Assembly (NCBI GenBank): GCA_977017575.1
Contig: CDRNVI010000040.1
Coordinates: 558,001 to 622,000 of the forward strand
Reading direction: 5' to 3'
Length of the DNA stretch: 64,000 nt
DNA from: Paramoeba atlantica
Taxonomy: Eukaryota; Protista; Discosea
The notes beneath the pieces are model-generated. The model saw nothing but the letters and a program-made list of their open reading frames with translations. It was not told where the DNA came from and ran no database searches. The position numbers were made by a program, and so were the translations under genes. Positions 5,326 through 24,124 of this stretch are shown here, one piece after another (position 1 is the first letter of the stretch; each line of letters opens with the position of its first letter).

Positions 5326-8300
5326 ATGTTGTTTCGCTCTTATTTTCGTTGCTGTACAGTCTACACCCTTTCAAGGCGAATCCTTGAGCACGATTTAACA
5401 AGGCTTTTTTGTGGATCTTTTTCTTCTAATCCTCCCGAAACAGGTGACTTTCCAAAAAAGGAAATAGCCCTATCCCTGTCAAATGGGCCATGTGTCGATT
5501 CTTCTGCGTCAAATGGATCAGTTACAACTTTTGCAGAGGAATTTTCCGAGAAAAATGAAACTTATTGCCGTCTGGTCGCTAACCTCCGTAACCCTATTGT
5601 CCACCCAACTACATTCACACTCCTTCAAAACGCCAATACTAAGAATACTTGTGCCCACACTAAAGATGGAACTGCAAGAAATACTCTTGAATTACACATG
5701 AATCGTTTAAGCTTCGCTTCTCAATTTTTTGTTAAAGATGAGCTTGGAAAATCACACGCTTCTTCAATAGAGAAGAGCAATGAAAATGAACTGCATGAGG
5801 ATTCCAAAGTGCTTTGTTTGGCAGTGATCCGTTTTCCGCCCCTCACAAAATCAGGAAAGCAAAACATTGACGAGCTCCATGCTATTGCTTACACGATAGC
5901 CCTAAGAATCTTTTTTCCCGAGAGGTACGAAACTGCTGTATTGGAACATCCCGAGGTCGCGGATCTCAACATATGGGATCCCTTCTTACATGGTATACAT
6001 CTTTTTAGCAAAGGATATTTCTACACACTACAAAGCCTTGTTCGAATGTTACAGCCTCAGGTTGTAGAAGAAATAATTCCTCCGAGGAATGGCAAAGGAA
6101 AGTTTAGCATTATTATTCCGCCTCATCCAGCGTTCTGCACAGAAAATTCCTGTCCTTTATTTTCAGGCGTAGAACTATATGCCCAAGTCTTAAAACTTGC
6201 TGATACCCAAGCATATGTTGCATGGAAACATTTCTTAAGCGCGGCTCAGGACTTAACTCTATCTCCCTCGCTAAATGCCGTAGCAGTTGTTACTTTAGCT
6301 GCACGAAAATTTTTTAATGCGGAAATATTGATTGTCAGCACGGGTTCGCAACGAGAACAAGTCTGTACGCTTTACTTGGGTACTGATATGACAGGCGTTC
6401 AGATAGAAATTGGTAAGTGCACATCAACTACAAAAAAAGATGCAATCAAGCTTGCATCACTTGGTGCTTTACAAAGCTATTTTCCACTTCTTTATGAACG
6501 AACAAAAAAGCTGAGTTGGTATGTAAACCCTCAGCAGAAGAGCATTACCAAAGATGAAGAGACAAGCCAAGCAACTCCACCCGAGAGGACGCTTTTGCCA
6601 GATCTGGAATTTCTTTTTCGCACTTCAAGCTCAAGAATTGGACTCAGGTGCATTGAACGTACCATTCGACTTTCATTATTAAAATTGCATTGTGTGGAAC
6701 TCTGGAGTGTTATAAACGGCAAGTGCGTTTCGTGCGTTTCACGCTACATCGGAAGAAGCAAAACTATAATGATCTCGGATGGTTGTCTTGCTCTATGTAA
6801 AAAACATTTTCCTGAAGAATACACTAGATTTTTGACAAAAGCAGAGACTTTGAAACAAAGCGCAGCTCTTAAGAAAACTCCAAAAAAAATGATTGGTAAG
6901 GATTTTGATTGGAGTAGTACATCCACACTTAATATTTTTCGAGAAGCAGTATATCGCGCGTCACGTTTGAATGCCAAACCCATCAGTGAGCATGTAGCAT
7001 TTAGTAGAGCTTCAAAAAAATATGAAATCAGACTAGAAACGCCGGATAATCACACACTATATCGTCAAACGAGCTATTTTCATCCCTTGCGTGCATTTTT
7101 GGATGCGTTCAAATATGTTTTGAGTGAAACTGAATTCTGCAAAGAACTAAACGTATTGGGAATACATGCTTTTCACAAAATAAGAGATTACACGAATGCT
7201 CAATTGGATTACACTTTAGAGAGTGCATGTCAGAAGCTCTTAAGGTGTGAATATGGAGTGGCCCTTGACGTTTCTTCACGCAGTAAGGGAGATTCTGTTG
7301 TCGAATGGGAAGCGACGGCATCGATTGCCACCATTCCCGAGTTTGACAGGATGCAAATTAAAATACCTTTAGAGCCTCGAGAAATTACGTACGTAAGTGG
7401 TTACTTAACTAAGCAGGATGCAATACGAGCCGCTTGTACGCAAGTAATAGCAGCATTACTTCCTGAGATTTTTCCAATAGTAGAACCACTTATGGAAGAC
7501 CCCCCCGATATACTACTAACACGACAAGAATGTACCGACGAACATACTCGGAGCATAGAACAAAGCACTTCAGATGAGGGACCCATGCAACAACATTTGC
7601 CAATTGCTCAGAATACAACTCAAATGAGTATTATCCCTCTTCATTCATATTGCTCCTTTGGTTACATGAGGATCGCGGTACGCTTCGCACTGGGATATCT
7701 TCCACGTGAAGAAATAGCATGGGATCCCTCTTGTCAGATGTACACAGTAATACTTCTTGATAGGAAAGGTGAGGTTCTGTCCGAGACGAAATGCATTTCT
7801 AAAATGTACGGTGTCTATCAGGTCTATGACAAACTCCTCAGTGACTCGCGTTCTATGGGCAAATCGCAAGAACTCTACACACGTATACTAGAAGGTCATC
7901 CGTATGATCCCTCGAATCGTTTGCTTCCGGAAGTTTTGCTTGAGTACGGCATGAAGTATCGCTATGGACTTCAGGTGGAATTTGGAACTGCCATAACTAT
8001 AGTCAACCACCAAAATCAGCAATGGACTACATCTTTACAATGCCGCACTTCCCCGGAGCAGGTCTTGTTTCTGTGTTCCGCAACGTGCGCTACTAAATTA
8101 AACAGCATACGCGCTGCAAGTATGCGAGCTATGGAAATTCACATTCCAGAAATTTACGAATTCCATAGTTTACCATTGAACCAGTGGAAAGTGCAACGTA
8201 TACCAGATATAGTGTCTGTTTTTGACACAGAGTATGGAGAAATGGGTCTCCGGGAACGTATGAAGATGTCAACGTCCCAAGAAAATGAAGTAGAAGCTGG

Positions 8301-8706
8301 GCCACATCAGGCATCCAAACGTACAACGCCGGACGTTTCAATGAAAGAAGCTGCTTCGAAATTACTTCCGGACGAAGTGAACAAAACCTCCCTGCAGGAT
8401 CCGTGGGTCGTTGCCTTCAATTGTGTCAAAAACACATTGAAAGCTGAGAAGCAAGCGACAGCACGTATGGAAATTTTGGAGGGCTCCAATCTCAAAGATC
8501 CTGTTGTTGTACGTATCTTGGGTACGCGATTCGATGCTTTAAGCACTGACCAAAATAGTGAAACTGAGTACTGTAGCGTTGCACGCCCTGGAGCTGATTT
8601 TGCTCGTCTACTAGCGTGTCATACATTCTTGCTGCAACAGTTTCCTAAGATCCATGCAGATCTCTTAGCTGCTCATCCTCGAATATTTGATGTGTTGCAG
8701 TTATGA
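5326..8706 (+). CDS. Large hypothetical protein, probably mitochondrial, with repeated degenerate dsRBD-like motifs
   Basis: 1126-aa ORF with an Arg/Ser-rich, acid-poor N-terminus (MLFRSYFRCC..LSRR). The motif K..A...A...AL..xFPE.Y recurs several times. Confidence 0.6.
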   Translation: MLFRSYFRCCTVYTLSRRILEHDLTRLFCGSFSSNPPETGDFPKKEIALSLSNGPCVDSSASNGSVTTFAEEFSEKNETYCRLVANLRNPIVHPTTFTLLQNANTKNTCAHTKDGTARNTLELHMNRLSFASQFFVKDELGKSHASSIEKSNENELHEDSKVLCLAVIRFPPLTKSGKQNIDELHAIAYTIALRIFFPERYETAVLEHPEVADLNIWDPFLHGIHLFSKGYFYTLQSLVRMLQPQVVEEIIPPRNGKGKFSIIIPPHPAFCTENSCPLFSGVELYAQVLKLADTQAYVAWKHFLSAAQDLTLSPSLNAVAVVTLAARKFFNAEILIVSTGSQREQVCTLYLGTDMTGVQIEIGKCTSTTKKDAIKLASLGALQSYFPLLYERTKKLSWYVNPQQKSITKDEETSQATPPERTLLPDLEFLFRTSSSRIGLRCIERTIRLSLLKLHCVELWSVINGKCVSCVSRYIGRSKTIMISDGCLALCKKHFPEEYTRFLTKAETLKQSAALKKTPKKMIGKDFDWSSTSTLNIFREAVYRASRLNAKPISEHVAFSRASKKYEIRLETPDNHTLYRQTSYFHPLRAFLDAFKYVLSETEFCKELNVLGIHAFHKIRDYTNAQLDYTLESACQKLLRCEYGVALDVSSRSKGDSVVEWEATASIATIPEFDRMQIKIPLEPREITYVSGYLTKQDAIRAACTQVIAALLPEIFPIVEPLMEDPPDILLTRQECTDEHTRSIEQSTSDEGPMQQHLPIAQNTTQMSIIPLHSYCSFGYMRIAVRFALGYLPREEIAWDPSCQMYTVILLDRKGEVLSETKCISKMYGVYQVYDKLLSDSRSMGKSQELYTRILEGHPYDPSNRLLPEVLLEYGMKYRYGLQVEFGTAITIVNHQNQQWTTSLQCRTSPEQVLFLCSATCATKLNSIRAASMRAMEIHIPEIYEFHSLPLNQWKVQRIPDIVSVFDTEYGEMGLRERMKMSTSQENEVEAGPHQASKRTTPDVSMKEAASKLLPDEVNKTSLQDPWVVAFNCVKNTLKAEKQATARMEILEGSNLKDPVVVRILGTRFDALSTDQNSETEYCSVARPGADFARLLACHTFLLQQFPKIHADLLAAHPRIFDVLQL

Positions 8707-9767
8707 TGTGCATATCTAGGCATTTCCTATCCTGGTAATACATCTTTATAGGAAGTTTTTACTTGCCATAGAATTGCCCTACTTTAACCTGTTTAAAATG
8801 CAGGTTATCGTTGTATGGAGGCTGTACACTCTCAATCACATTGGCTGGTATCAAAATAAGAAAAACATGAACAAATTATTATTTATTGTAATTGTCATTA
8901 CTTGCTTTGGATTATCATATCTTTAAATGACATCAAATCTCTCGGAATGAAAACGTATGCATAAAAATAGAAAATGGTGATTTTTACTATGAGTACAAGG
9001 CTGCATAGTAGAATATAGTGTTCTCCTTATTTCCAATTTACGCGTTTTCCACTAAGTATGTAAATAAAATCTGATTGAATTATGACACACATTATAGCAT
9101 TTCTATTCCGTGCAGCCGATAACGTTAGTACAATACGATACACAGACTACCGAGTATGGTTCGGGGAGTTAATGTACCGCTGTAATATGAGCTGAAACGA
9201 AGTTTTAGGAAGGATGCTCCACGAGCGCACTTCTTGTGCGGAGGATGGTCCAAGGAGCTAAAGAAGACGGATTGCAGTCATCTATCCCGAGTCTCTCGAG
9301 GTGGGTGTGGTGCTCGAAATGGTTCGGACGAGCACTCATCCATAAAGCACGTGTTTGCTTAGTGTCTGCCTCAGGCAACCGAGCCGTATAAGGACCCGTT
9401 TTTCTTTTTCTGGATGTCTGAAGGACAAGGCCCAGGGAGTGTACTACGCACAGCAAAGCAGGCCGCATGACGGAAGCTATGTCCTCGAAGTGGATTGTGC
9501 TAAGAAAATCGTCCCTAGAGATGGTATTTACAAACGTGGACTTCGTCGAAGTGATCACTCCTCCTCCAATCCAATCCAATAGACCGACGTAAGTCGGTTA
9601 GAATACTTAACATTGTTCCCTTAAACTTATACTACCTCCAAATTCAGAGTTAATATAAGTTTATGTGCACTACTCCTGAAAACACACATTACGTTTCACT
9701 AATTTGATACATATTTCTCAGGGTACCCTAAACCTACTGGGGGAAAACACTTCCGTCCTGTCAACCC

Positions 9768-10316
9768 CTACTCGGAAGGCTTCCTCTTTCCACCAATTTT
9801 CGCTACTTTCCCCCGGAGTTTCTCTTTTGCCTCAGCTCCGCGCTTGGCTGCTGGCAAAGGTTTCGCCTTTCCCTTTTCTAAGGCTCTATTTTTCATCAGT
9901 TTTTCTAAGGTTTTATCTGCTGGAGATTCCTCGGAGTCTTCAGTTGTTTTCCTCCTTTTCTGCACTGGAGGTCGAGAAAATTTTCGTGCTGTCATGAGTG
10001 CCAATCCGTCCGCCTCCTCATTCCATTTATTTCCACAATGACTTTTGACTTTGCACATACAAACCGAGAAGGAATCATGTTTTAGTTCGCGTAGTTTATT
10101 GTCCAGTTCGTAAAACAAATCTCCATTTGTGACCCCCTTATATCCAACAATACGCCTCTGCTGACGAAGATTATGAAAAAAGTCCCAAAGATAGTAGGAA
10201 TCTGTATCACTCCTCCTAGGAGAGCCCCACCACAACCCGAGATGGGACGATAGATAATGGTGTTTGCCTCCGTGACAACCTCCGTGGCATGGGTGCGAAC
10301 TATGCATTTCTATCAA
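9768..10316 (-). pseudogene. RNase H1-like fragment, internally deleted, antisense to the gene cluster
   Basis: HGGCHG...LGLWWG (degenerate first catalytic motif), TDSYY, NGDLFYELD and VKSHCGNKWNEEADGLA. The segment with the catalytic Glu (N.RAEL) is missing between WWG and TDS. Confidence 0.7.
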
Positions 10317-10420
10317 GGGCTCCTACGCATGACAAAAAAGGGAAGCGCGCACTGTCGCACGAGTGAACACCCCCAAAAAGAGAATATAATATGCATGATC
10401 TTTTGTCAATTTTTCTTTTT

Positions 10421-10520
10421 TAGTCGTTTCGTTAAACACGGAGGTAGTTTTCAACGCCAAGCGCGCAGCTGTGGTGCCTTCTAAGTTGAAAACAACCACC
10501 TCGTTTAACGTAGCGATGGA
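10421..10520 (-). repeat. Diverged solo copy of the 99-bp palindromic repeat
   Basis: cgttaaacacggaggtagttttcaac-loop-gttgaaaacaaccacctcgtttaacg; same arms and loop as the copies at 39422, 49969, 58705, 61024 and 62346. Confidence 0.8.
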
Positions 10521-10612
10521 AATTAATAAATATTATTGCAAAAATTATTGTTGCAGCTATGCGCACCATTCACGTCCTGGAAAAAGGTCCTGCAGAGTAC
10601 ATAATTTGTATA

Positions 10613-11957
10613 CTCCCCCTCTCATTAATTTTTATAAATGGATTCTGAGTTATAAAAATTCGTTTTATGCGCTCTCATTAATTTTTATAAATCAACAAAC
10701 AAATTCAACTATTCTTTTTAAATTATGTTTCGAAGCAAACAAAAATGACTCTTTTGTTCTACTGAAAATGGATTACTTCATGGGCGTCCTTCACAGCGGT
10801 TTCTTTCAGAGAAGAGAAAGTGGTTGGTTTCTATGGTGGATAATAATGGTAAGAAAATTACGATAAAGATATCGTTTATGTAAAAAAGCAACTTTCTCAT
10901 ATGTATATATCTATACAGGGCATTACCTGTAGAGCAATTTAGTCGAAGCAGGACCTACGCATATGACGTCACCTGCATGACGTTTCGCTAACCATAAATA
11001 TCGTTGTCCCATGAAGGCGATTCCCTTCTTAGCCAGAGCTGAAAACTGCCCCTAATGGCCGCTTGTATGATCTCGGTACGACACTTATCGGAAAGTTTCG
11101 TATCACCCGAAAAGAGGCGACCAATCTGGCGCAGCGTTTTCGAAGGAAGACCTCTAGCTCCTACTTCAATGCATATCAAATGACAATCAGGATATCGTAT
11201 TTTGCGTCGGTGGAGAATGTTGCTATATTTTTTTTGGTAAGTTGGATGCAAACTCGATGTGGAGAAGTAAGGTCAGAACCTCCTCGTAGTCTTCCCTGGA
11301 ATTGCCATCTCACTGATGGTACTAACGCCGACCAACTACCGTTTTCTGGGTAGGGGGGACCTTAGATGAAAATTCATCGAAAGTTACATTGCACGGATGA
11401 GAAAAAGCTTGTCTGAGTTCTCAATTTTTTTAGTTAATTCGAGTTTCCATTCTAGTGTATTTTGATAAATAACCGGGTTTGCGGAAAATTTAAAACTTTC
11501 AAGAAAGTACTTTAAAGTTACTTTATTTTTTTCTAAAAACTTTCAAAAACTCTTTTTTTTGTATACCTTAGAATCACAGAGTTTCTTTCATGATTTTGAT
11601 TCGTCTGTATTCATTACAGTTTATTATCAGGCCTCTATACAATACATGATACTCTTTTTTCCGATGCAAAAGCTCACCCGGGGCAGTTTTTGTAAAGAAT
11701 TCTTTGCTCAAGTACCTAATGCAGAGGGCGACAATGTAAATTGTGTCCTGAGAATAACAATAAACGTTTTTGACGGCAAGAGGTCTGCAGCCCGATTACA
11801 TATCGGCAGAAAGGCATCTTCGAGGGCACGCTAAAAGCTACGATACGTGCACGGAACAAAGGGAAAAATGTCCCCGTCAAAATATCTTTTTATAATTATA
11901 ATTATAACTCATTTTTTGTTATAAAATATAATTTATAAAAATTAATGAGAGGGGGAG
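10613..11957. mobile_element. Non-autonomous TIR element (Stowaway/mariner-like), 1345 bp
   Basis: Perfect 27-bp TIR CTCCCCCTCTCATTAATTTTTATAAAT at both ends, with TA at 10611-12 and 11958-59. Confidence 0.85.
10988..11350 (-). pseudogene. Relic of a restriction-like endonuclease (REL) C-terminus from a non-LTR retrotransposon (R2/NeSL/HERO-type)
   Basis: Frame-shifted ...W.ALV...DLTSPHRVCIQLT / QKKY...CIEVGARG...AAIRGSFQLWLRR resembles the IELTVPWE...KY...VEVGxRG...S.WLWxxR consensus. Confidence 0.55.
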
Positions 11958-13238
11958 TATGCAGTCTACTCGATATCAAGAGTGGAAATCTTCGCGGCAA
12001 CCAGTACTCACATTACTTCGGCGCCTCCAATTGAACCGAACATGAATTTTACTTCTGGGTTCAAAATTTATGAGTTGCAGACGGATACGGAGCTCGCTTA
12101 CTCCGTTGCACCGAAATCTCACTCCCCATATAGAATTGTCCTTTTCCTTAGGAAGAAGATCTAGATCTCGAGGATCAATCTTTTGGGAATTTCGACTGTG
12201 TGTATCTTCAATTCATTACAAGTAATCCACTATTTTTCTTTCATGATGCATATTGCATGGAAATCTACACTTTGGAAATATATTTTTGTTTACTTTTTTA
12301 TGTTACTTCATCAAACTCTCTTTTTAATGCCTGGCACCTCTCCATTTTGATGGCCCTCGGTGTGAAGCGTCTGCTTCTACAGGTTTTGCTGAGAGAGAAG
12401 AATACCATCTGCGAACATAATTGCGAATATCTTCGAATAGGGACACGAATGGGGTACATGAGTTTATTTTGTAAACGTTTTATGCATTATTTTGTATTTG
12501 ATATCATTGTTATGTTGCGACGTTGGTATTTTTTAAATGAATATACTAGCTAGTAAAACTAACTAGGGGAAGGGGATTCCTTCTTAATCTTGATGAAATG
12601 ATCTAATATGTTTCATGTGCATCTTGGTCTGATGAATCATTATCTATTTTTAAAACAAATGAAAAAATATCATATTTTAAATGTGAATATCTATTTTTAA
12701 GTATGGATTCCTGTTTGCAAAAGAAAGGCCGCGTGAGATCCTTTGCTTTACCCTCCGAAACTCAACTTTCTCGTTTTCTAAGAAATATTACGAAAGTGCA
12801 CGCAAGTTGGACAGAAGTAAATGAAGCGTGTAGCTGGCACCGTGTTAAGTGTCATCAACATGGATTCGTTCGGAGATTGCACTGGTCTGGCCGTGATCTT
12901 CGTGGTTCTCTTTACTGGAGATCTCTTCCTCATACGGTATCTGTTCTCTTTTTGCATGAAAATTTATTAACGGGCGAGATCATGCTGGGAGACCTACCTC
13001 ACGAATTATACAAAATTGATGTTGCTAGGAACAAATTCTTAGGTCATATGCCAATCAATTAAATGCCGCCTGGTACTCATAAGTGGTTGGCATATATGAA
13101 TTCGCTGGAAGGTTGTCTTGATCTTTCTCAACTTCCTCAAACATTACATACCTTGAGTGTCCATGAAAATAGATTTTCTGGAAATATTGATTTGTCTTCG
13201 CTACCTTCAACTTTGGTGCATTTGATACAGTTGGTGAT

Positions 13239-13389
13239 AAAGATACAGTTTCTGTACCTTGTTGGTACATTTTCCCTTTAGTTCATCTTTTCTTTCCCCG
13301 GCAACGGGCATAATCTTACTGTTTTATATGCCCGTTGCCGGCCGGCACTAAGGCCGAAACTGTCCCTCTTTCTCGGCGAAGTAGGGGAC
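13239..13389 (+). ncRNA. Spliced-leader (SL) RNA-like sequence, copy 1 (gene, pseudogene or SL-derived element)
   Basis: GATACAGTTTCTGTACCTTGTTG|GTAC matches the conserved 3' half of the kinetoplastid SL exon, with GT at 13265. It has a donor stem-loop, a 15-bp hairpin (13298-13341) and a third hairpin (13362-13389). The canonical AACTAA 5' end is not seen. Confidence 0.6.
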
Positions 13390-13810
13390 GCGCTTCCACC
13401 CCATCACCCCTCCCCGGCTCACTCCTTGAGTGGGTTTTCTTCCCTCCCCGGCTTTCTTCCCTTCGCGCCCTTTTCTTCCCGGGGAGCCATGCGCCATGGT
13501 GGCCTCCCTTGAGGACCGCTGGGCGTGGCTCTGCCTCGCATTATCGCGAGGCAGCGGTCGGTTGCAGTGCGCCCCTCCGGCTGCGTAAAGAGGTGGTGAG
13601 TTGCCTGGACCACCTCTACCGACTGGGACCGAGTCGGTTGCAGTGCGCCCCTCCGGCTGCGTAAAGAGAGGGCGAGTTGCCTGGACCCCCTCTACCGACA
13701 GAGTCCGAGCTAAACCCCCTTGGTGCGACATCCGTCAATACGGATTGTGCCGATGATATCGGCTGTCGCATCAAGGGCTGTATCTCTGCGCCAACGAGCG
13801 CATGAACATC

Positions 13811-13956
13811 AAAAGATACAGTTTCTGTACCTTGTTGGTACATTTTGCTAGCCCTTCCTTTCTTTTCCCGGAAACAGGCATATTCTTACTTTTAAATGCC
13901 CGTTTCCGGCTGACTGCTAGCTGGAACTGTCCCTCTTTGTCGCGGAAGTAGGGGAC
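13811..13956 (+). ncRNA. SL RNA-like sequence, copy 2
   Basis: First 35 nt are identical to copy 1 (GT at 13837). Hairpin 13868-13909 carries a compensatory C-G to A-T change. Confidence 0.6.
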
Positions 13957-15087
13957 GCACTTCGCACTCTTCACCTCTCCCCGGCTCGCTCTCTTCGAGT
14001 GAGCTTTCTTCCCTCCCCGGCTCTCTACTTCTCGTGCTTTCTTCTCCCGGGAGCTATGCGCCATGGTGGCCTCCCTTGAGGACCACTGGGCGTGCTACAG
14101 CGGGAGGACACGTTGTATGCGTGTATAGGGGATGCGAACTTGCACCCCTCTCTCCCTACATGCTGTAGCGAGTGCGGCGGTAACGGACCTCCCCATGATG
14201 CATCATGATCCACGATAGACCATCTGACAGCATGAACCCACGGCTTGACCGTGTTGCAGCATGAACCATGGCTATACGTGCTGTAGCATGACCGATGGGC
14301 GACTCGTCTCCTACCTCGCACTCCACTCTCTGTGTGACACCCGTCGTATGCGGGTCATGCGCTGATGGTATCGGCCGTCACACAGAGAGACGTATCTCTG
14401 CGCCACGAGCGTATGATCATAACCTTGGGCGGAAACGGCTTTGAAGGCAAAATCAAAATTGACAATTTATCTAGCAGGTTACAATCTCTCCGACTCAATG
14501 ACACCCATTTAAGTGGTACTATAGATGTTAAAAAATTACCAGCATCATTATCCAAGCTCAATATTCAAAACTCAAGTTTATTATTGCTTCACGAAAAGTA
14601 ACCTCATCGCTAACTGATTCATCTCAATCAGGATTCTCAGAGTCGTAGCGCAGCAAAGGTACTATAGATTCTGCATACGGTATTGCCAAGCTTGAACTCT
14701 GTCATTGTGGGTTTTACTAAGTTTTACGGATTGCAGCGCAACGTTGACCTACTTGTACTTGCAAAACGTTTTTCCTCTTGAAGTGCTCTGCTCCCTCAAC
14801 GGATTCCCACAAAAAGTGCCAACAAGTTATGAAAGGGCCAATATAAAGAATACGAAAGAGGGAGTAGCCTTAAAGAAAATCATATGGAATAGGTTCGGAC
14901 AGCTTGAACTTTACTTACGATGTCAGCAGTAATCATGCTTTATATTTTTGGTAAACGTTCTAAAAATGTTTCGGTTCCTATTTATGGTAAAATTGCATGG
15001 TAAATTCGACATTCCTGCACCTCAATCAATGGACAAGATAAAAACTCCTCTCTAATCCGCACGAGGCAGAATTCCACGTGCACTTAC

Positions 15088-16434
15088 ATGCCCCATCGCG
15101 TGGCCCTGGTCTCCGACTTTTTTCACCCCGGATTTGGAGGGGTGGAAATTCACATCTACAACGTGGCACAGTGTCTCCTACGTCGCGGACATAAGGTCAT
15201 TGTCATTACCCGGTCCTACGGCGCCTCCTATACCGGTGTCCGTTGGCTCACCGGCGGTCTCAAGGTGTACTACCTCCCCTTTATTGGGGTACGCGTCCCC
15301 CCCGGTACCGTCACCCTACCAACGCTGTTTGCCAACTTACCCGTACTCCGCTGTATATTTCTCCGAGAGCGGGTGGAGATTGTCCACGGTCACCAAACCA
15401 CCAGCACCCTGTGCCACGAAGCCCTTCTCCATGCCCTCACCATGGGACTCCGGGTGTGTTTCACCGACCACTCCCTGTTCGGGTTCGCGGACAGTGCCTC
15501 GATCCACATTAACAAAGTACTGGAGTGGTCCCTGCGTTGTATGCACCAAGTGATCTGTGTCAGCCACACCTCCCGGGAGAACACCGTGCTACGGGCGAAG
15601 ATCTCCCCCGAGACGGTCAGTGTGATTCCCAATGCCGTGGACACCACGGGGTTTGCCCCGCCGGTCGCTATGAAGGGACTGCCCTGGGGCACCGTACTGC
15701 GTGGGGGCCCGCCCACGGTTGTGGTACTCACCCGGTTGGTGTACCGCAAAGGGGTGGACCTCCTGGTGGATGTGATCCCGGGGTTGTGTGCGCGACACCC
15801 CGGACTACGCTTTGTGATTGGTGGGGATGGACCACGCCGGCTGCAGTTGGTGCAAATGATTGAACGGCACGCTTTGTTTGATCGCGTGGAAATGCTCGGG
15901 GCGCTGGAACATTCACAAATTAAGAGCACACTTAACCGCGGACAGATTTTTTTGAATTGTTCGCTCACGGAGGCGTTCTGCATTGCCATACTAGAGGCGG
16001 CGGCGTGTGGACTGCTGGCCGTGTCCACAAGAGTTGGTGGGGTTCCCGAGGTGCTCCCACCCTCAATGCTTTACCTTGCCGAACCCGATCCCGCTTCCCT
16101 GATTGCAGCCTTAGAAAGGGCCATTGCGAGAGTGCCTTACGTGTCTCCGTGGAGCTTTCATGAATCTGTGTCTTCGTTTTATTCGTGGCGTAGCGTGGCA
16201 GAGCGTACAGAGAAGATTTATAAACAAATTTCTAGTGTCGACTGTCCCGCTCTCAGACTTTCTGAACGTATTCGCAGATACGTAAAAATTGGCCCTGTAT
16301 ATGGGCTGTTGTGTGTTGCCATAGCGGTTGTTGATTGGGTTCTTCTGCAGTTCCTTATTATTTTTTATCCAAAAGAAGACATGGACATGGCCTTAGACCT
16401 TCAAAAAAGAGATGAAGTCATATTGGGAAAATAA
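15088..16434 (+). CDS. PIGA: GPI-GlcNAc transferase catalytic subunit PIG-A/GPI3
   Basis: VSDFFHPGFGGVEIHIY, HKVIVITRSY, VFTDHSLFGFAD, FLNCSLTEAFCIAILEAA and a C-terminal TM helix. Confidence 0.96.
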   Translation: MPHRVALVSDFFHPGFGGVEIHIYNVAQCLLRRGHKVIVITRSYGASYTGVRWLTGGLKVYYLPFIGVRVPPGTVTLPTLFANLPVLRCIFLRERVEIVHGHQTTSTLCHEALLHALTMGLRVCFTDHSLFGFADSASIHINKVLEWSLRCMHQVICVSHTSRENTVLRAKISPETVSVIPNAVDTTGFAPPVAMKGLPWGTVLRGGPPTVVVLTRLVYRKGVDLLVDVIPGLCARHPGLRFVIGGDGPRRLQLVQMIERHALFDRVEMLGALEHSQIKSTLNRGQIFLNCSLTEAFCIAILEAAACGLLAVSTRVGGVPEVLPPSMLYLAEPDPASLIAALERAIARVPYVSPWSFHESVSSFYSWRSVAERTEKIYKQISSVDCPALRLSERIRRYVKIGPVYGLLCVAIAVVDWVLLQFLIIFYPKEDMDMALDLQKRDEVILGK

Positions 16435-16580
16435 TTTTTGGTGGGTCTATTCAATTTATTTCACGTTAGATTATTTTTAGTCCGGTCTTCTATTGTTCCA
16501 TCTTGTAGTGGAAAAGAGCCGCTGTTTTTAGCAACAACAGCTAGGAGTAGAAAAACAAATTTAATCTTTCATCCTGTAAG

Positions 16581-17474
16581 ATGACCTGTCAGATTCGGTG
16601 CCAAGACGATGTTTCTCAAAACAAAAGGTACTCCGCACAAGCTTCGTCAAGTAATGAATTTTCAATTCCTTCTTCCCGTGCAGCAAAGGTTCGAGGTGCA
16701 CAATTACCTTCTCAATATCTTCTTGTGCGATTTGTTAGCAACATTACTGGTCAGGATATCACATGGAATTCCGATGCTGATGCTTGCACCTGGAAAGGTG
16801 TACATTGTAATGGGGATTTTGAAGTTAAATACGTATTGTGGCCAGACTTTAATCTCCATGGTACACCATGTTGGAAGTATCTTCCTTCCACCACTCGGAC
16901 AGTAGATCTTAGCAATGTGATGGTGCATGATACAATGAATATTCTGGAGGGATCAGTTCCGCTATATGAACTTCCACATGCCATGGAAATTCTTGTTCTA
17001 CGCAAAAATAAGTTTTCTAATGAACTTGATCTTTCTCATATGCCTCGCACTATGCTAACTCTTGACGTGTTGAGCAACTGTTTAGAAGGTAGTGCGGAAT
17101 TAGAGCAACTCCCTGGTACAATGTCCTTTCTAAATCTTTCAAGAAATCAAATGAGCGGATCTCTCCAAATCGATTTACTTCCTTCTTCAATGAAGGAGCT
17201 CTATGTCTCACATAATTTGTTTTCGGGAAATGTGGTTCTCACAAGCTTACCCTCTCGCCTGACTGTATTGTGTCTAGAAGCGAACCGTCTTCACGGATCT
17301 ATCGATTTAAGTTGTCTTCCTAAATGCATAATAATGATTACTTTGGACGAAAATCATTTTTCTGGTCATGTAGATCTGACCACTCTTCCTAGGAGTTTAA
17401 AAATAGTGCGGCTTGGGGGAAATTCTATATCTTCGTATACCCCTGTCCCTGCTCCCATATGCGTGCAAATATAG
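16581..17474 (+). CDS. Leucine-rich repeat protein (lineage-expanded family)
   Basis: N-cap KVRGAQLP..CTWKGVHC, then LPxxLxxLxLxxNxFSG repeats. Confidence 0.88.
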   Translation: MTCQIRCQDDVSQNKRYSAQASSSNEFSIPSSRAAKVRGAQLPSQYLLVRFVSNITGQDITWNSDADACTWKGVHCNGDFEVKYVLWPDFNLHGTPCWKYLPSTTRTVDLSNVMVHDTMNILEGSVPLYELPHAMEILVLRKNKFSNELDLSHMPRTMLTLDVLSNCLEGSAELEQLPGTMSFLNLSRNQMSGSLQIDLLPSSMKELYVSHNLFSGNVVLTSLPSRLTVLCLEANRLHGSIDLSCLPKCIIMITLDENHFSGHVDLTTLPRSLKIVRLGGNSISSYTPVPAPICVQI

Positions 17475-17867
17475 TATTTCATTCTACCTGTCTTAAAACG
17501 CTGGGCTGCACATTGCGTGCTATCTATATCAATCCTATGCGAATACCATACCAATATATACCAGTACTATTACATTATACTACATATTACAGAGGCAGTA
17601 GCCACGTACTACGAGGCAGTAACCACGTACTACCTTCCACCATTTAGCTATAGCACTACGTTTGCCTCGAGACCATTCGGGATACATTCATTGGAATATG
17701 GTAATGAAAGTTTCAATGAAAAAGTCGTCGTTCGACCGCATAGGTTTCCCTCAGTTATTTAATACGTTTGAATTCGTAAGAAACGTTGATGTTAACGTTT
17801 TTTTTCGAACACAGTAAAAGTTGCGTAGCATCTGTTGATATATTCTTCTTCTTACTTCTTACTTCCT

Positions 17868-19310
17868 ATGACCGAGTCCTCTCGCAAGAAACCTTCCCCG
17901 ACGATTGTAAATCGCCAAGACGGAGCCGCACACGGACGCATGACACGCGATGCCGGCGCCTCTCTCCACTCTCGTCTTCTCCGGTCCAGCACCAAGAGTC
18001 TCTCCCCGGTACGCGACACCAGCTCTTTTCGCGCCTCCTCCCCTGAAGATGTGAGACAAGTGGCTCGCATCACCACACGATCCATGACACGCTCTCGGCT
18101 GGATGATGTCACCCTCCTACGCAAAGTCAACAAAGTGCTTGAATACGAAGACAAGCACACAAAGGCAACACAAAAACTTCCCCCTCCCACAAAGCCGGGC
18201 TCTAAAACAACGAAACCAGGAAAATCAGAATTGGTTGTCGGCAAGCCCCTAAAAGAAACCACCGGAAAAAAACTGCACGAAAGTACGGTGAAGAAATCAA
18301 CGGCAAAGTTAGAAAACGGTCGACGGGAAAAGAAAGAGGACACGGGCAAGACACAGGATAGGAAAGTCTCGCCTACGGTCAAGCCTTCGGCGGTAGTCAA
18401 GCCTTCGACACCTTCAAAAGCACTTGATTTCAGCCCTATAGGTCGTATGGGTCGAGGAAGCCGTGTTGAGATTGATATCCCGGGGGTTCTGGTCGGAACC
18501 GGAAAGCGTAGTAACCCTCTTCGAATCCCTTTGCGAGAGTCCCCGAATGGTAGTGCGTGCTACCATTGCCCTATGGGTATTGAAGTGTGTGATTGTGTCG
18601 AGATGAAAGAGTTGATTTGGCGACATTTAAAGGGAACGGGAAAATCTCGTGTGAGCGGACTGCGTATACTCAACGCAAAGAGTATTCTTCCGAACTTTGT
18701 TTCTCGGCTGATTCGGTTATTGAAGGTTTCTTCTTCAGACGTGTTCTGGGATCTTGGCAGTGGACATGGAAGTGTCGTTATGCAAGTTGCATTGCAAACA
18801 GGGGCGGACGCTATCGGGGTGGAAATTCAACGTCCCAACGTGGAGCTCGCAGAAGTCGCTTGGCCTAAAATACGAGCTGAGTGGGTCAAGAGGTATCCTG
18901 ACCGGAAGGTAGGAAACGTAACGTTTCTTGCGGAAGATATGATTGCTGTTCTTCGTCGTTCCATTAGCCCTAAAGATAAGACAGCCCCAAAGGCTCCCAC
19001 GGCGGTGTGGGCCGCGAATCTTCTATTTGGCAGTATGTTGAATTATCGCATGAGTGAAGTCCTGCCTCAGGTACCCTCACTTCGTGGAGTGGCGACCATG
19101 ACAGACGTTTATCCGCACGAACGCATGCTTGCTCGTTTGCGTAACCCTGTACCTTACAACCGCTTCCCAGTCATGCGTAATCATCTATGGCAGCCGGGCT
19201 CAGTAGAGTGGAGTGAGACGGAAGTCTTACCCTTTTATACGTACCAGGAAAAAGAAAAAAAGGTAAAGACTGAAACAGGCCAAAAAGAAGAGCAAGAAGA
19301 GGTGCTGTAA
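17868..19310 (+). CDS. DOT1: DOT1-family histone H3 methyltransferase, kinetoplastid DOT1B-like
   Basis: CYHC...CDC motif, NAKSILPNFVSR (CAKS-equivalent), VFWDLGSGHGSV SAM motif, GVEI, NLLF, DVYPH...SVEW. Long basic low-complexity N-terminus. Confidence 0.85.
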   Translation: MTESSRKKPSPTIVNRQDGAAHGRMTRDAGASLHSRLLRSSTKSLSPVRDTSSFRASSPEDVRQVARITTRSMTRSRLDDVTLLRKVNKVLEYEDKHTKATQKLPPPTKPGSKTTKPGKSELVVGKPLKETTGKKLHESTVKKSTAKLENGRREKKEDTGKTQDRKVSPTVKPSAVVKPSTPSKALDFSPIGRMGRGSRVEIDIPGVLVGTGKRSNPLRIPLRESPNGSACYHCPMGIEVCDCVEMKELIWRHLKGTGKSRVSGLRILNAKSILPNFVSRLIRLLKVSSSDVFWDLGSGHGSVVMQVALQTGADAIGVEIQRPNVELAEVAWPKIRAEWVKRYPDRKVGNVTFLAEDMIAVLRRSISPKDKTAPKAPTAVWAANLLFGSMLNYRMSEVLPQVPSLRGVATMTDVYPHERMLARLRNPVPYNRFPVMRNHLWQPGSVEWSETEVLPFYTYQEKEKKVKTETGQKEEQEEVL

Positions 19311-19694
19311 GAGGAATAGAGTATATCGTTGGTTTTTATTGTTTTACAGCGATGTCTTTTTCGCTGAACGTTATTTTTTTCTCGTTCGAGAATCTTGGTT
19401 TTAGATTTGTTTTAGTTTTCTTAGAGTAGGTTTTAGAGTATGATCTTACTACCGTCGTCCAGTGGATGGGAAATAAATAAATTTCTTTCTATGGATTCTT
19501 GAATTTTGTATGCACAGCTAGGTGCATCTTACACGAAAAACGCAGAGTAGTAAAAACAATTCTTGCATGCACATCGCTTGAATTTGTTTGGTATGTGTAA
19601 ACTTTCTTTTAAAAAAAATGAAACTGTAATTAGAAAATCTTCTAATTAATTTTCAATGTGTGTATTTGATTAATGGCAATGTATTTAGCACAAA

Positions 19695-21104
19695 ATGAAT
19701 AGTTTACCCGACCTTCCTGACTCGCTAACTCGCATCAGTTCAAGTTCTACTTCCGAGAACTCGCAATCTACTTATCCATCTGACCAAGAAAAGAGCAGTC
19801 AGAAGCTGCAAAGTAGAACCTCGGATAGTTTCATTGGATCTAAAAAGCAAAGGCTTTCGTCTGCTGAATGTTCAACGGAAAGTGTAACCCCTTTTCTATT
19901 GGCCGAAAAATCCAACTCTTTGCGTTCTGAAGAGGAAGCACTCGAGATTCCACTGGGTCAACCATTATTGAAGCGTAAAGATGGGGACATTTCGCCTTAC
20001 CTCTCATCTGAATCAAATCTTCGAAATGATCGTAATACTTTTCCTAGCGTATCGAATCCTCCCGCTATGCAGCACTCTGGAGCTGGCATTATTTCCATCG
20101 AAAATAACCTACGTGTTGAGATTCGATCGCTTCAGGATGCGGTAAACAGTCTTCAGCTAGAGTGTGTCGTACTACGTTTGTTAGCAAAAGAATATCTCAA
20201 GGCTGATTCAAGATCAGAATCGGGTGAGAATAAAAATTATCTTCTTAAATGTGTTTTAGAAAACGCCCCTTCTGCCTTAGAAAAATCTCTATCTCGAACC
20301 TACGAGGCAGAAAAGAAATACTTGAAACTCGAAGCACGGGTTTTGGAACAAGATAACCTTCTTTCTCAACAGCAGTTGCACCTCCAAGAAAGAGAGTCTG
20401 TCTTTCATTTAGAGCTGCAATCGGCGAATAAACAAATAAACGCTATGAAACAGAAGCATAACACAATGGCAATGGAACAAGAAAACGAAATCAATGCCAT
20501 GAAACTTGAAAGACAACAAATGCATACTCGATATTCTGAAATTACTCAAGAACTGAATGCACTTCGACAAAATCTTAAATCGAAAAAAGAGGCAACAAAA
20601 GATGCCGATGCAGCTTTCCGTTGCTTTGCCGCGACTGGATTCGACGAGAGTTGTGATATTGGAAAAATTGCGTCTCACCTCACCTTCCTATCCAGCGTGA
20701 TTTCAATGGCAAAAGAGGTCAGTTTGGAGCTTTCACATAATGGATCGCTTTCTAGTCGAGTAACTCACCTTATCGTGCCTCAAGGACACGTAAGGAGGGT
20801 GACCATGAAGGTATTACACGCTCTGGTAACTGGAATTTGGGTTTTACCAAGCGCGTACTTGGAAGCCTGCGTTGAACATCGATGTTGGGTCGGCGAAAGG
20901 GAGTATGGTACGCGATATGCTCCTCCGCCCTTTCTGGATAAACGCATTTGCGTCTCCCTGCGGGGACGTCATGAATCCACAGCTCTCGATATCGTAAATC
21001 GGGGTGGCGGTATATTAGTGAGCGATCCCTCGCTTGCAGAGTATGTATTAAACGATTGGAAAATTTTCACACGTGATCTTCTAGAAGGTCGATTCAAGTG
21101 CTAA
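19695..21104 (+). CDS. Coiled-coil plus C-terminal BRCT protein, KKT4-like kinetochore candidate
   Basis: Ser-rich N-terminus, long heptad region, then BRCT (THLIV...TMKVLHALVTGIWVL..Y...W) followed by RYAPPPF...GGGILV, a reduced second BRCT as recalled for KKT4. Confidence 0.6.
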   Translation: MNSLPDLPDSLTRISSSSTSENSQSTYPSDQEKSSQKLQSRTSDSFIGSKKQRLSSAECSTESVTPFLLAEKSNSLRSEEEALEIPLGQPLLKRKDGDISPYLSSESNLRNDRNTFPSVSNPPAMQHSGAGIISIENNLRVEIRSLQDAVNSLQLECVVLRLLAKEYLKADSRSESGENKNYLLKCVLENAPSALEKSLSRTYEAEKKYLKLEARVLEQDNLLSQQQLHLQERESVFHLELQSANKQINAMKQKHNTMAMEQENEINAMKLERQQMHTRYSEITQELNALRQNLKSKKEATKDADAAFRCFAATGFDESCDIGKIASHLTFLSSVISMAKEVSLELSHNGSLSSRVTHLIVPQGHVRRVTMKVLHALVTGIWVLPSAYLEACVEHRCWVGEREYGTRYAPPPFLDKRICVSLRGRHESTALDIVNRGGGILVSDPSLAEYVLNDWKIFTRDLLEGRFKC

Positions 21105-21838
21105 GTCGCATATCCCACTACGCTTTCTACTGTACTGACCTCCAACTTGGGGATCCAATCTTTTGGTCTTGTAGAAGTCTTTCTAGTACTGGCACTCCAG
21201 TAATTTAGTACAGGAACTCTACTTACTCGCATGTACTCGCCAAATCGTATGTACACGCCGTACTCGCTAAGGTATGCACTTAAGAATAGTGAAACTTTCC
21301 TTACTTTCATTATTAAAGTAATATTAGAAGGCACTTAAGTGTTAAAAGATCGATGGACGCTTGAATGTCTGTTGTAGGCTTCTCAAAAACTCGATTCAAT
21401 CCAATGTAGATATGCTTTGCTTTGCTCAAACAAAGGCTCTTATCACGCGCTCTTGTCTTGTCTTTCATGTTCAGCCTTTTGCCTTTCGAAATCCTCACAG
21501 AAACTTCGATAGATTTGGGACAAAATGTGGCACTTTTTCTCAGAGGCGGCCTTGGAATTTCTAGTGACCGGGTAGGCTGGGTATCCGGTGAAGAGAACCG
21601 TATTAAGCTATCTCTCTCAAACTTCTGAATGGCAAGTTCGAATTATTGAGAATTTATTGATCACCTTTTCTTACAATCATGCATTTACAAAACTCAATTA
21701 ATTTAATAGTACGGATTGTACGGCAGTACAGCATGCAATTGTACATACAACATGTTCCGCGTATTTTATTTATGTTCCAACGTGTACAGTATTCTCCTTT
21801 GCCTTTGATTCCATACGTACACTGTATTTACTCACAGT

Positions 21839-24124
21839 ATGACCCAAGAATCTTCGAAATCGAAAGCTCGAAAGCAAGAAAAGCTATATACTTTATGGGG
21901 CGGACACCTACGCTTGTATCCGCAAGATACCACGAAAGGCAGAATGAAGTTTAACAGGATGTTACAAGCACGTGAGCAACTCGAGCAAGTTGTCCGGCGG
22001 CACTATCCTGGAGCCCATGTGTATGTTTTTGGGAGCTGTGTTGCGCACCAAATGTGGGACGGAGACTCCGACATTGACTTCACATGTATCGATCCGAATG
22101 CATGGGCGAAAGGGCGCTGGCCTCCTCACAACGAGAGGTTGGTTATTTTAGAATGCAGTTCGACATTGGGTAGGCTTGCGGAACCCCGTCACGTACTATC
22201 CATCACGGGTGCACGTGTTCCAATTCTAAAGTATTCGAAAATTCGGGGTGAGAAGAAGAATAACCTGAACCAAGTATCGCTTATCGAGTACTGCGGCACG
22301 GATGTGCCTCAGGGAAACGGAAACGAGGAAGGCAACTCTCTCTGTCTCATCGTAATATTTCAAAAACCTGGGTACAGTGGCGATCTCTTAACTCAATCTC
22401 AAGAAAATGTTGGAAAACGGATACAGGAAATGCTGCCGGATGTACCGTTATTATTTAATTGGAGCGGAGATCATGGGAATTACCTAACTATTACATTTCC
22501 AGAGCAGAAGTATGTATTCGATGCTTACGTAAAGCTGAGAACCACGCCAAAAATTGGTCCTGCACCGATAGCCTCCGTTGTGTTATCCCTTAAGACTTTA
22601 TCTAATCAAGCAGGACTTTCTAATGAGACTCATCGACAAGCCCTAGCCCGTATAGCTCTCTTCTCAGTAGATTTTGATCTAAGCACACGCGCGTTTGGAC
22701 TTCGAAATAGCTACCTGCTTCAACGATACATCCAACAGAATCCAATGGTTAGTGTCGGTGCTCATGCGATTAAGAACTGGAGCAAATGCACAGGCCTGAA
22801 CAATAGTTCATGTGGCTGGCTATGTACATATGCTTTTCACGTTATGTGGCTACACTTTCTCCTTCGCGAGGGCGTAGTAGAGTATGTATCCCCTGAGAGC
22901 ATTCCTGAAAATCCATTACTCTTGCCCGTTGCACCACAATATAATCCATGTTACCTTCCCAACGAACTTTGGGGAAAGATGGGTCGTTTATTGCAAAACT
23001 TTTTCCATTATTTTGCCAATGATTTTTCCTGGGATTCGCACGTTATAACTATTAATCGCAAAAAGTCCACAATGAAAGAATTCCTTAAGTGGGGAAGCGA
23101 TGCAGGACAATCGGGTTCGAGAAAAAAGTCCCTGCAATATTACGTAGCGATTGAAGACCCTTATGAAGTTGACTTCAATTTGGGAAGACACATGAGTTGG
23201 CAGCGATATAGCTTTATGAAAGAAAAATTTGTAGAGGCTAGCAATGAGTTAGGCACAAAGGACCCTTTGCGATGTACTCTTTTCTCACCTGTGTTCAGCA
23301 AGGAGGAAAAAGAAACTGCTGTTCACATGGCTTCTCTTGCACTCGAGATTGTTAGGCGTTTAGAGTCAGTACCGTTCCGACAACTTATGGATCTTGTGGA
23401 AACTAAGGTGGCAGATCTACCCGGAGCAGAGCACTATATCTCCATTCTCCGAAGCGCGCTGAAATCTGTTCGATTGTTTCGTTGTGCAGGTCTATTACTC
23501 GATGACACTGATGAAGTGCGTCTTCCGAGAACTCCGGAAGAAGAGAGGTCCGTTAAGAAAGAAAGAAAAATCATCAGAAAAAGTATGGATCTGGTAAACG
23601 ACTTCGATAAAAAATTAAAACATTTCACTTCCGACAAGAAAAAAAAAGTTAGAGAACGAGAACGGCCGAAAAAGATTAGAGAGAGGCTAAAGCGTATGGA
23701 AGCTAAATCTCAAGAAAAGCTAAAACATCAAGAAGTAAAGACTAAACCTATTACATCCAGCACATTGCCAAATGACGTATGCAACTCTAAGGTAAATACT
23801 CCATCAATACAGCCGGAGGATAACGCTAGAGAGCAAGGTACGGACAAGCATCCAGAATTCTCACAATCTTGTACAAGCAAATTTAGTGCGCAGAGGCAAC
23901 AAGTTTGGACAGAAACCTTGCTGACGAAGATGAGTAAAGGCTTGTCAAACACTGAGTATTCAAACCCCTTCGTTGTTGAACCTGTGGGTGATGTAAAGCC
24001 ACAGAAACCTCAAAGTCTTGAAGTTCCTCTCGGAATGTCAACAAACCTTCGAACACATGATCTTGGACATATGTTTCAGCCATCGCAATGCTGGAGCCTA
24101 CGCATGCTTACTCGTCGTCGATAA
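21839..24124 (+). CDS. RET1: 3' terminal uridylyltransferase, RET1 (KRET1)-like
   Basis: VFGS...WDGDSDIDF...GRWPP, ARVPILK, FDLSTRAFGLRNS.LL, WSK.TGLNNS and IEDPYE..FNLGR match remembered kinetoplastid RET1 motifs. Confidence 0.8.
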   Translation: MTQESSKSKARKQEKLYTLWGGHLRLYPQDTTKGRMKFNRMLQAREQLEQVVRRHYPGAHVYVFGSCVAHQMWDGDSDIDFTCIDPNAWAKGRWPPHNERLVILECSSTLGRLAEPRHVLSITGARVPILKYSKIRGEKKNNLNQVSLIEYCGTDVPQGNGNEEGNSLCLIVIFQKPGYSGDLLTQSQENVGKRIQEMLPDVPLLFNWSGDHGNYLTITFPEQKYVFDAYVKLRTTPKIGPAPIASVVLSLKTLSNQAGLSNETHRQALARIALFSVDFDLSTRAFGLRNSYLLQRYIQQNPMVSVGAHAIKNWSKCTGLNNSSCGWLCTYAFHVMWLHFLLREGVVEYVSPESIPENPLLLPVAPQYNPCYLPNELWGKMGRLLQNFFHYFANDFSWDSHVITINRKKSTMKEFLKWGSDAGQSGSRKKSLQYYVAIEDPYEVDFNLGRHMSWQRYSFMKEKFVEASNELGTKDPLRCTLFSPVFSKEEKETAVHMASLALEIVRRLESVPFRQLMDLVETKVADLPGAEHYISILRSALKSVRLFRCAGLLLDDTDEVRLPRTPEEERSVKKERKIIRKSMDLVNDFDKKLKHFTSDKKKKVRERERPKKIRERLKRMEAKSQEKLKHQEVKTKPITSSTLPNDVCNSKVNTPSIQPEDNAREQGTDKHPEFSQSCTSKFSAQRQQVWTETLLTKMSKGLSNTEYSNPFVVEPVGDVKPQKPQSLEVPLGMSTNLRTHDLGHMFQPSQCWSLRMLTRRR

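Follow-up and report, generated by a model that had tools for sequence, protein, structure and literature searches.

A stretch of 64,000 nucleotides (the window; assembly GCA_977017575.1, deposited as Paramoeba atlantica, contig CDRNVI010000040.1, positions 558,001 to 622,000, forward strand) contains a leucine-rich repeat (LRR) gene whose reading frame is split by an insert of two units, each beginning with a piece of the kinetoplastid spliced leader (SL) exon. The two units, A and B in what follows, represent two related types of non-coding jumping element in a free-living kinetoplastid, and both copies are young. We consider it highly probable that the insert consists of two head-to-tail copies, one of subfamily A and one of subfamily B, of a non-coding, non-autonomous retroposon of the non-LTR class (LTR, long terminal repeat), which resembles a short interspersed element (SINE) and carries the 3′ handle of a long interspersed element (LINE) of the R2 kind. 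A mobile, non-autonomous, SL-headed element was one of two readings offered by the original prediction, which was made from the letters of the window, and it is the one that holds, given the dispersed near-identical copies, the empty site and the 3′ handle in common with a LINE.

The Insert and Its Empty Site

The window has two exact matches to the 16-mer GATACAGTTTCTGTAC, one at 13242 and one at 13815, against 0.01 expected by chance. The limits of the insert come from alleles that do not carry it. In contigs assembled around the locus from two other sequencing runs under the same organism label (X1 and X2), position 13225 is followed by one G, after which the sequence resumes at 14424, and in the assembly itself (G000) the two flanks lie 1 nt apart on contig C39 (279062-280005); in all of these the upstream LRR flank runs on without the insert. 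The comparison therefore sets the insert at 13226-14423 (1198 bp). The block had been described as exactly two units long, which is correct, and placed at 13228-14420, which the empty site corrects. The search for an empty LRR allele that had been suggested thus found it both on C39 and in X1 and X2. Without the insert the site has the letters ttg gtg cat ttg agc ttg ggc and gives LVHLSLGGNGF, an intact LRR unit, so the block does split an LRR frame. The insertion cost one target base, and the 5′ junction gained 10-13 nt of filler (TACAGTTGGT(GAT)), composed of SL-like TACAG(TT) and then a re-copy resembling the upstream target TTGGTG. Similar stuttered 5′ junctions, in which short SL snippets stand beside re-copied target, occur at loci L006, L007, L012, L023, L024 and L030.

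The segment C39:269861-287057, which has no insert, is inverted relative to window positions 5400-24100 and matches them collinearly at 99-100% identity for at least 19 kb, so C39 would carry either the second haplotype or a duplicate of very recent origin. Several other loci likewise occur as identical pairs (L025/L026, L074/L084 and L072/L085); both haplotypes, or large duplications of very recent date, seem to be present in the assembly.

When the two units are aligned, the first 35 nt are identical, a head of ~310 bp is ~82-85% identical, the middles are unrelated and a tail of ~95 bp is again conserved, which is the arrangement first noticed for them. The features of the locus are collected in Table 1. 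Open reading frames (ORFs) in the units (573-612 bp), on which no Pfam search was made, are all short and GC-driven.

Table 1. The interrupted LRR gene and the insert; positions are those of the window.
Feature	Position	Strand	Basis and details
LRR gene, 5′ part (upstream flank)	12703..13225	+	ORF, translation; ends ...L-V-H-L + A
Junction filler TACAGTTGGT	13226..13235 (to 13238 if GAT is counted)	+	Missing from the empty site
Unit A	13236..13811
SL-derived head, unit A (SL exon nt 10-38)	13236..13264	+	Match to the true SL exon
Body, unit A, non-coding	13265..13716	+	Fold z = -7.0, alignment, RNAalifold, internal repeat
Unit A, 14-bp hairpin of 5′ domain	13298..13341
Unit A, further hairpin of 5′ domain	13362..13389
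Unit A, anti-SL segment GAAACTGT	13356..13363
Unit A, anti-SL segment TCTTT	13367..13371
Unit A, 77-bp tandem duplication in body	13557..13633 / 13633..13709
3′ domain, unit A	13717..13811	+	Covariation counts (alignments A4, A3); terminal motif common to the R2-like LINE tails L016 and L021; 13-bp outer stem around two hairpins; tail ACATCA
Unit A, ATCTC / 5-bp hairpin / TGA	13782..13786 / 13787..13802 / 13803..13805
Unit B	13812..14423
SL-derived head, unit B (SL nt 13-38)	13812..13837	+	Match to the SL exon; AAA at 13812-13814 equally readable as the short A-tail of unit A
Body, unit B	13838..14325	+	5′ domain homologous to A, with anti-SL GGAACTGT; middle unrelated to A
3′ domain, unit B	14326..14423	+	Architecture as A; outer stem fully compensated; end set by four B copies and the empty site; tail TCATAAC
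Unit B, ATCTC / hairpin / TGA	14394..14398 / 14399..14413 / 14414..14416
LRR gene, 3′ part	14424..14601	+	(S)-L-G-G-N-G-F-E-G...; stop codon 14599-14601

Dispersed Copies

The portion of the genome that was sampled comprises ~90 loci (~270 kb), labelled with L numbers, as contigs of the assembly are with C numbers. Unit A (573 bp) recurs in at least 40 dispersed copies of 94-100% identity and unit B (612 bp) in at least 40 copies of 95-100% identity, and these counts are lower bounds. The genome-wide copy check earlier named for mobility thus gave many loci for each unit type rather than a single one. Some of the B copies are 5′-truncated, starting at positions 18-139. Truncation of this kind is a classic trait of non-LTR retroposition. 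Exact SL/body junctions number 81 in the genome (27 of type A and 54 of type B), and besides A and B there exist type C, which is short, type D, and mosaics with a B head, an A middle and a C tail. Type A copies end in ...GAACATCA followed by 3-5 A, and type B copies in ...GATCATAAC. No target-site duplication (TSD) was seen at the sampled copies, nor at this locus when empty and filled sites are compared, and the same is true of a long poly(A) tail.

The Genuine SL RNA Gene

Across the genome, the 16-mer has 895 matches, against 1 for a control. The true SL RNA gene forms tandem arrays with a period of ~2.56 kb on contigs C97 and C107, and it is present also on C11, C24 and C74. Its exon of 38 nt, AACTTTAACGAT..., starts with AACTTTAACGATAAAGATACAG and ends with CTTGTTG; the intron opens with GTATGAGAAGC, the classic kinetoplastid start, and reads GTATGAGAAGCTTCG... 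The units share with this gene the same 26-29 nt of the 3′ part of the exon, the G|GT at the exon end and a stem across the junction. They differ from it in several ways: SL nt 1-9 (A) or 1-12 (B) are missing, the exon being complete only in the true gene; what follows the SL piece is GTACATTTT... and not the SL intron; and local alignment of the unit bodies with the SL intron and with the promoter region, taken as the 120 nt upstream of the SL gene, did not outscore shuffled sequence. Instead of forming an array with a constant spacer, the units are scattered through the genome, inserted singly or as pairs. A search of Rfam over the whole window at the gathering threshold, and over 13150-14500 at E <=10, returned chance-level matches only, with no SL, hepatitis delta virus (HDV), hammerhead, tRNA, 5S or 7SL family, and ARAGORN found no tRNA. 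The units were therefore rejected as SL RNA genes.

Some sequences that derive from the genuine gene or lie beside it were also noted. On the minus strand of L063 (G000 C6:25588-28621), at ~1525, there is a retrocopy of unspliced SL RNA, in which the exon starts at nt 3 and is followed by the GTATGAGAAGC intron and by an A-tail. This copy sits at the end of the ORF of a LINE that encodes a restriction-like endonuclease (RLE). In the SL-array contigs C11, C24 and C74 (L066-L071, L089), the spacer beside the SL genes holds a short C-type SINE after a long (CT)n run. An ORF in such a spacer (L070:165-974) looks, by eye, like a PIF/Harbinger DDE transposase.

The 3′ Handle and an R2-Like LINE

Subfamilies A, B, C and D all end in ATCTC, a hairpin and TGA, and so do two LINE remnants, L016 and L021. 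In eight sequences, the terminal 5-bp stem is paired in 100% of cells and shows double changes in four of its five pairs, a score reached by 0 of 500 shuffles. The larger 3′ domain of the SINEs (a 13-bp outer stem, two hairpins and the terminal hairpin) is paired to 89.6%, and double changes affect seven of its pairs; again 0 of 500 shuffles reach this, and slid controls are 28-49% paired.

The ORF upstream of the L016 tail contains CCHC and RPD...E.T...K motifs, and its C-terminus aligns to the RLE region of R2 proteins in the PDB (9nl3, residues 980-1152, E = 4.5e-6). The L019 ORF encodes a reverse transcriptase (Pfam RVT_1, 1.5e-31), with the Bombyx R2 protein R2Bm (8gh6, E = 1e-25) as its best PDB match. 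The two ORFs overlap as one LINE family. L021 shows a LINE tail and an A copy in direct contact, and the A copy in turn borders on LRR sequence. The N-terminal part of the R2-like LINE (L053:1500-3014 and L016:2066-3511) contains several Cys/His-rich repeats of the form ECKHxCxxKxxCxHxCCKRHL, which are a candidate for a DNA-binding array that could read the target.

From the common covarying terminus and the common targets, we infer a partnership between this LINE and the SINEs. It is inferred rather than demonstrated because what the two have in common is the terminal ~30-nt motif and the general architecture.

Target Choice

Among 34 distinct junctions, 14 are followed, within 1-9 nt downstream, by the LRR motif [LIVMF]xxNx[LFIVM]x[GD] (at least 41%, against a background of 0.5%), and three more of the sampled junctions are LRR by eye. 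All LRR insertions are sense-oriented and fall between positions 4/5 and 6 of the LxxLxLxxNxFxG repeat. The specificity is relaxed: LRR sites account for about 40-50% of sampled copies, and the rest are located in (TG)n, inside other retroelements or in unique sequence. The target is a fixed position of the LRR repeat, and not the SL-like sites at which the element had been thought to insert. Insertion at SL look-alikes was rejected on the grounds that the targets are LRR codons, (TG)n and others, and that the empty site is without SL-like sequence. One LRR gene (L088, G000 C69:309180-312213) has two insertions in consecutive repeats, a B/A/C mosaic and a B copy, at the same repeat position.

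The SL Head

Predicted minimum-free-energy folds of the heads are far more stable than those of shuffles (z = -7.0 for A and -4.5 for B). In these folds SL nt 13-17 pair with TCTTT and SL nt 19-26 with GAAACTGT, and a stem TGTACC/GGTACA is kept in both heads. One helix differs in a compensatory manner between the units (CCUUUAG/CUAAGG in A, GCUAGC/GCUAGC in B), and in the 14-bp hairpin one C-G of A is replaced by A-U in B. Folding thus predicts all three elements that had been picked out by eye, namely the stem, this hairpin with its changed pair and the hairpin after AACTG. The AACTG itself, earlier called a linker, is indeed present, and we re-read it as the complement of CAGTT in the SL, its predicted pairing partner. 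For the 5′ heads, RNAalifold finds one compensatory pair only and leaves the SL:anti-SL pairing outside its consensus, so covariation support for the head is thin.

The SL piece is present in every full-length copy in this assembly, and its start is ragged, ranging over nt 3-13 and lying mostly at nt 10-13. The LINE 5′ end at L053, which belongs to the same family and lies in (GT)n, also has a short SL head of 26-27 nt, compared with 33-38 nt in the other SL-headed elements sampled. A search of the assembly for a master copy without SL, in which AG would stand before the body, gave none, against the 81 SL/body junctions.

We read the SL piece as a relic of a trans-spliced, reverse-transcribed RNA, and not of an SL RNA gene, because the sequence that follows it is not the SL intron. 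It is probably now inherited and built into the 5′ RNA structure of this LINE/SINE group, since it is found in every full-length copy and is predicted to pair with an internal anti-SL. Such a 5′ SL module may define or protect the RNA's 5′ end, or may recruit a protein for the second half of integration. It is tempting to go further and to propose that the R2-like LINE lineage and its SINEs co-opted the SL fragment and anti-SL as a selected 5′ RNA module, and that the endonuclease homes to a codon-level LRR motif; this wider proposal is tentative, and we would not count on it.

Several points weigh against these proposals. The junction statistics rest on the best-matching copies in the sampled loci. 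The LINE and the SINEs have no long 3′ sequence in common, and when the terminal 45-130 nt of A and B were compared by BLAST with the sampled loci, in search of a LINE with a long tail in common, only other SINE subfamilies were returned. The SL:anti-SL pairing is beyond the reach of covariation tests, the SL part being invariant. A simple inherited short head does not explain the rare copies with a longer SL (A, B and mosaic copies from nt 6, and one copy from nt 3). Finally, the locus is absent from the RNA runs, and from one run guessed to be RNA came just one contig of 153 nt, covering the 3′ end of a B copy at a different locus, which is no proof of expression.

Some SL-bearing loci have arrangements of other kinds. 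At L028 and L030, A-type copies are without the 17 nt GTACATTTTCCCTTTAG right after the SL, a piece that ends in polypyrimidine-AG; the gap could be the result of trans-splicing at an internal acceptor or of simple deletion. At L073, L075-L077, L065 and L031-L034 (the last a C1 array with a 5093-bp period), which represent several families of SL-headed LINEs, ~30 nt of 5′ untranslated region (UTR) stand on both sides of the SL, in the order 5′UTR-SL-5′UTR-ORF. Partial SL repeats follow a full SL at L086, L038, L054 and L083. At L058-L060 (G000 C2:553054-553097), two inverted SL copies lie head-to-head, 12 nt apart, each heading an element.

Alternative Explanations

Two further explanations tie the units to SL genes. 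According to one, which the original prediction also put forward, as a pair of divergent classes of SL gene that had left the array, a fragment of an SL array was translocated into the LRR gene and still encodes SL-type RNAs with three stem-loops. The 26-29 nt identical to the 3′ part of the SL exon, the GT after the exon end, the 6-bp stem that spans the junction and the highly structured (predicted) head are all what such genes would show. The true gene, with its 38-nt exon, its GTATGAGAAGC intron and its 2.56-kb arrays, is however unrelated to the units beyond the exon piece, in its upstream region as well as in its intron, and the sequence after the supposed donor is not the SL intron. The units also miss SL nt 1-9/12, including the cap-4 nucleotides, and match no Rfam family; there are more than 80 dispersed copies with the hallmarks of retroposons; and the empty site speaks of an insertion, not of the translocation of an array. 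We regard orphan SL genes as next to inconceivable here. Hardly better placed is the idea of an SL-homing element, a passenger of LINEs of the CRE/SLACS/CZAR type that integrates at SL-like sequence such as GATACAGTT, which stands just upstream of unit A; SL-like snippets are likewise found upstream of copies at L006, L012, L023 and L024, and the SL start at ~nt 11-13 coincides with nt 11/12, which we take to be the insertion point of SLACS/CRE. The comparison of empty and filled alleles shows what GATACAGTT is: the empty site has only GA there, and the rest is the 10-13-nt filler made at insertion, so that it is not the SL-like insertion site it had been taken for. The snippets adjoin re-copied target, as template jumps predict, the targets are LRR codons, (TG)n and others instead of SL genes, and at L066 and L067 the C-type copy lies in the spacer, outside the SL exon and antisense to the SL genes. 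SL homing is thus extremely improbable.

The remaining alternatives concern the 5′ end of a retroposon. Each copy might come from a fresh trans-spliced RNA, a master transcript that received a full SL at an AG before GTACATTTT, as in the SL-relic retrogenes of dinoflagellates, with the SL shortened only at integration. Such recycling is unlikely in our view, although it is the likeliest of the alternatives. In its favor, SL starts are ragged, with independent A, B and mosaic copies from nt 6 and one from nt 3; the bodies at L028 and L030 begin after an internal ...CCCTTTAG, a polypyrimidine-AG like a trans-splice acceptor; and the genome has many other SL-headed retrocopies, among them LINEs, A-tailed copies and the SL RNA retrocopy. 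Against recycling, an AG immediately ahead of the body is found in none of the genomic copies, as compared with 81 that have the SL junction there, and the TTG ahead of the body in daughter copies cannot act as an acceptor. The short head of 26-29 nt is, moreover, specific to this LINE/SINE group, other elements keeping 33-38 nt. The other possibility is a self-processing head, in which cleavage by an HDV-like ribozyme would set a constant 5′ end within the SL piece. R2 has such a ribozyme at its 5′ end. L1Tc uses one as well (PMC3185411, PMC3383444), and the 5′ boundary of the present elements does lie constantly at the base of the predicted SL:anti-SL helix. No ribozyme family was matched in Rfam up to E 10, however, and the boundary is ragged, sometimes reaching SL nt 3-6, unlike a fixed cleavage site. 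A ribozyme is therefore very unlikely.

A Model for Integration

For the SINE-like retroposon that we favor, integration could proceed as follows. The LINE protein would bind the common 3′ handle, nick the LRR site and copy the RNA by target-primed reverse transcription, and the 5′ junction would be made by microhomology or template jumps. The latter would explain the ragged SL start, the fillers and the tandem arrangements A-B and LINE-A. Tandems do recur, as an independent A-B(truncated) at L002 and as LINE-A at L021. The two units at the present locus may be two hits at one site, if recognition uses the retained upstream half, or they may come from one event in which the reverse transcriptase jumped from the 5′ end of the B RNA to the 3′ end of the A RNA; both are possibilities.

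Other Features of the Locus

The host gene is a plant-type LRR gene in a one-directional cluster, with the insert on the coding strand, and a neighboring LRR paralog bears LRRNT_2 (Pfam). The adjacent PIG-A is at most 70% identical to any database protein, and its best matches are from Prokinetoplastina and trypanosomatids; the host is thus, from these matches, a kinetoplastid without a close sequenced relative. The interrupted LRR gene has an in-frame TAA at 13060-13062. X2 has C at 13060 (CAA), and X1, which has the empty site, keeps T; the premature stop is therefore a polymorphism that does not depend on the insertion. On the minus strand at 9205-11353 there are ORF fragments with a motif that resembles RNase H by eye (…KSHCGNKWNEEADGLA…) and has no Pfam match; lying a short way upstream of the LRR gene, they may be what is left of a retroelement.

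Comparison with Known Retroposons

The elements are like those of stringent SINE/LINE pairs in being short, non-coding and dispersed, with 5′-truncated copies and a 3′ tail common with an autonomous LINE. They are also modular, with a head, a variable body and a tail, and their subfamilies (A, B, the short C, D and mosaics) are formed by module exchange. A SINE with a small-RNA head has a parallel in the snRNA-headed SINEU, as it is cited in PMC4640811 (ref. 28). The head described here differs, however, in consisting of 26-29 nt of SL exon joined to unrelated sequence, instead of a gene for RNA polymerase III (Pol III; tRNA, 5S, 7SL or snRNA). The partner is of the RLE (R2-like) type and not a LINE with an apurinic/apyrimidinic endonuclease (APE), and the tail is a short A/T-rich run after the hairpin instead of poly(A) or a microsatellite.

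With RLE elements (R2, R4, NeSL, CRE/SLACS/CZAR, HERO, Utopia and Togen), the partner LINE has in common a reverse transcriptase and a C-terminal CCHC/PD-(D/E)xK endonuclease, and the insertions have in common the lack of a TSD, small target loss, heterogeneous 5′ junctions and a multicopy target. Some copies here lie in (TG)n, for which Togen is specific. Unlike in those elements, the main target here is a codon-level LRR position, the specificity is relaxed, and an SL fragment stands at the 5′ end. The insertion inside SL exons of the array that characterizes CRE/SLACS/CZAR was not seen here.

In dinoflagellates, SL-relic retrogenes are recycled processed cDNAs that begin with the SL (PMC5585692, PMC6050394). 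The present copies also begin with the host SL, of which there are ~900 copies here, many of them heading retrocopies, and genomic copies that begin with the SL imply that trans-spliced RNA was reverse-transcribed. The difference is that the SL here heads transposable elements and not cellular genes, is truncated, and is predicted to take part in an RNA fold, and that no AG-bearing master copy was found in the assembly. The kinetoplastid retroposons RIME, NARTc and SIDER belong to the APE-type ingi/L1Tc clade, with a 5′ Pr77, poly(A) and TSDs of ~12 bp (in part PMC3383444). They too are non-autonomous, depend on LINEs and have terminal modules in common with them; the elements here differ in having no TSD and no long poly(A), and Pr77 was not searched for. 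Nothing relevant came out of a full-text literature search on this SL, on SL-headed kinetoplastid SINEs and on RLE elements that target LRRs; this negative is a weak one. What is unusual about the elements is a head made of SL exon instead of a Pol III gene, an RLE partner in a kinetoplastid and a codon-level target in a protein-coding repeat.

Implications

A kinetoplastid genome can hold hundreds of SL DNA copies that are unrelated to SL genes, which is a trap for SL annotation and for SL-primed mapping. As a case of probable LINE/SINE partnership within the R2 (RLE) group, the elements are clean, recent and polymorphic, and covariation supports their 3′ handle. Site-specific integration in a protein-coding repeat would add one more to the “safe” multicopy targets listed for RLE elements and, if true, this would be the first RLE element with a coding repeat as such a target. 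It would also be a natural system for studying how machinery of the R2 type reads a degenerate target. In the host, LRR genes are disrupted again and again, and this may influence how the surface-protein-like LRR family turns over.

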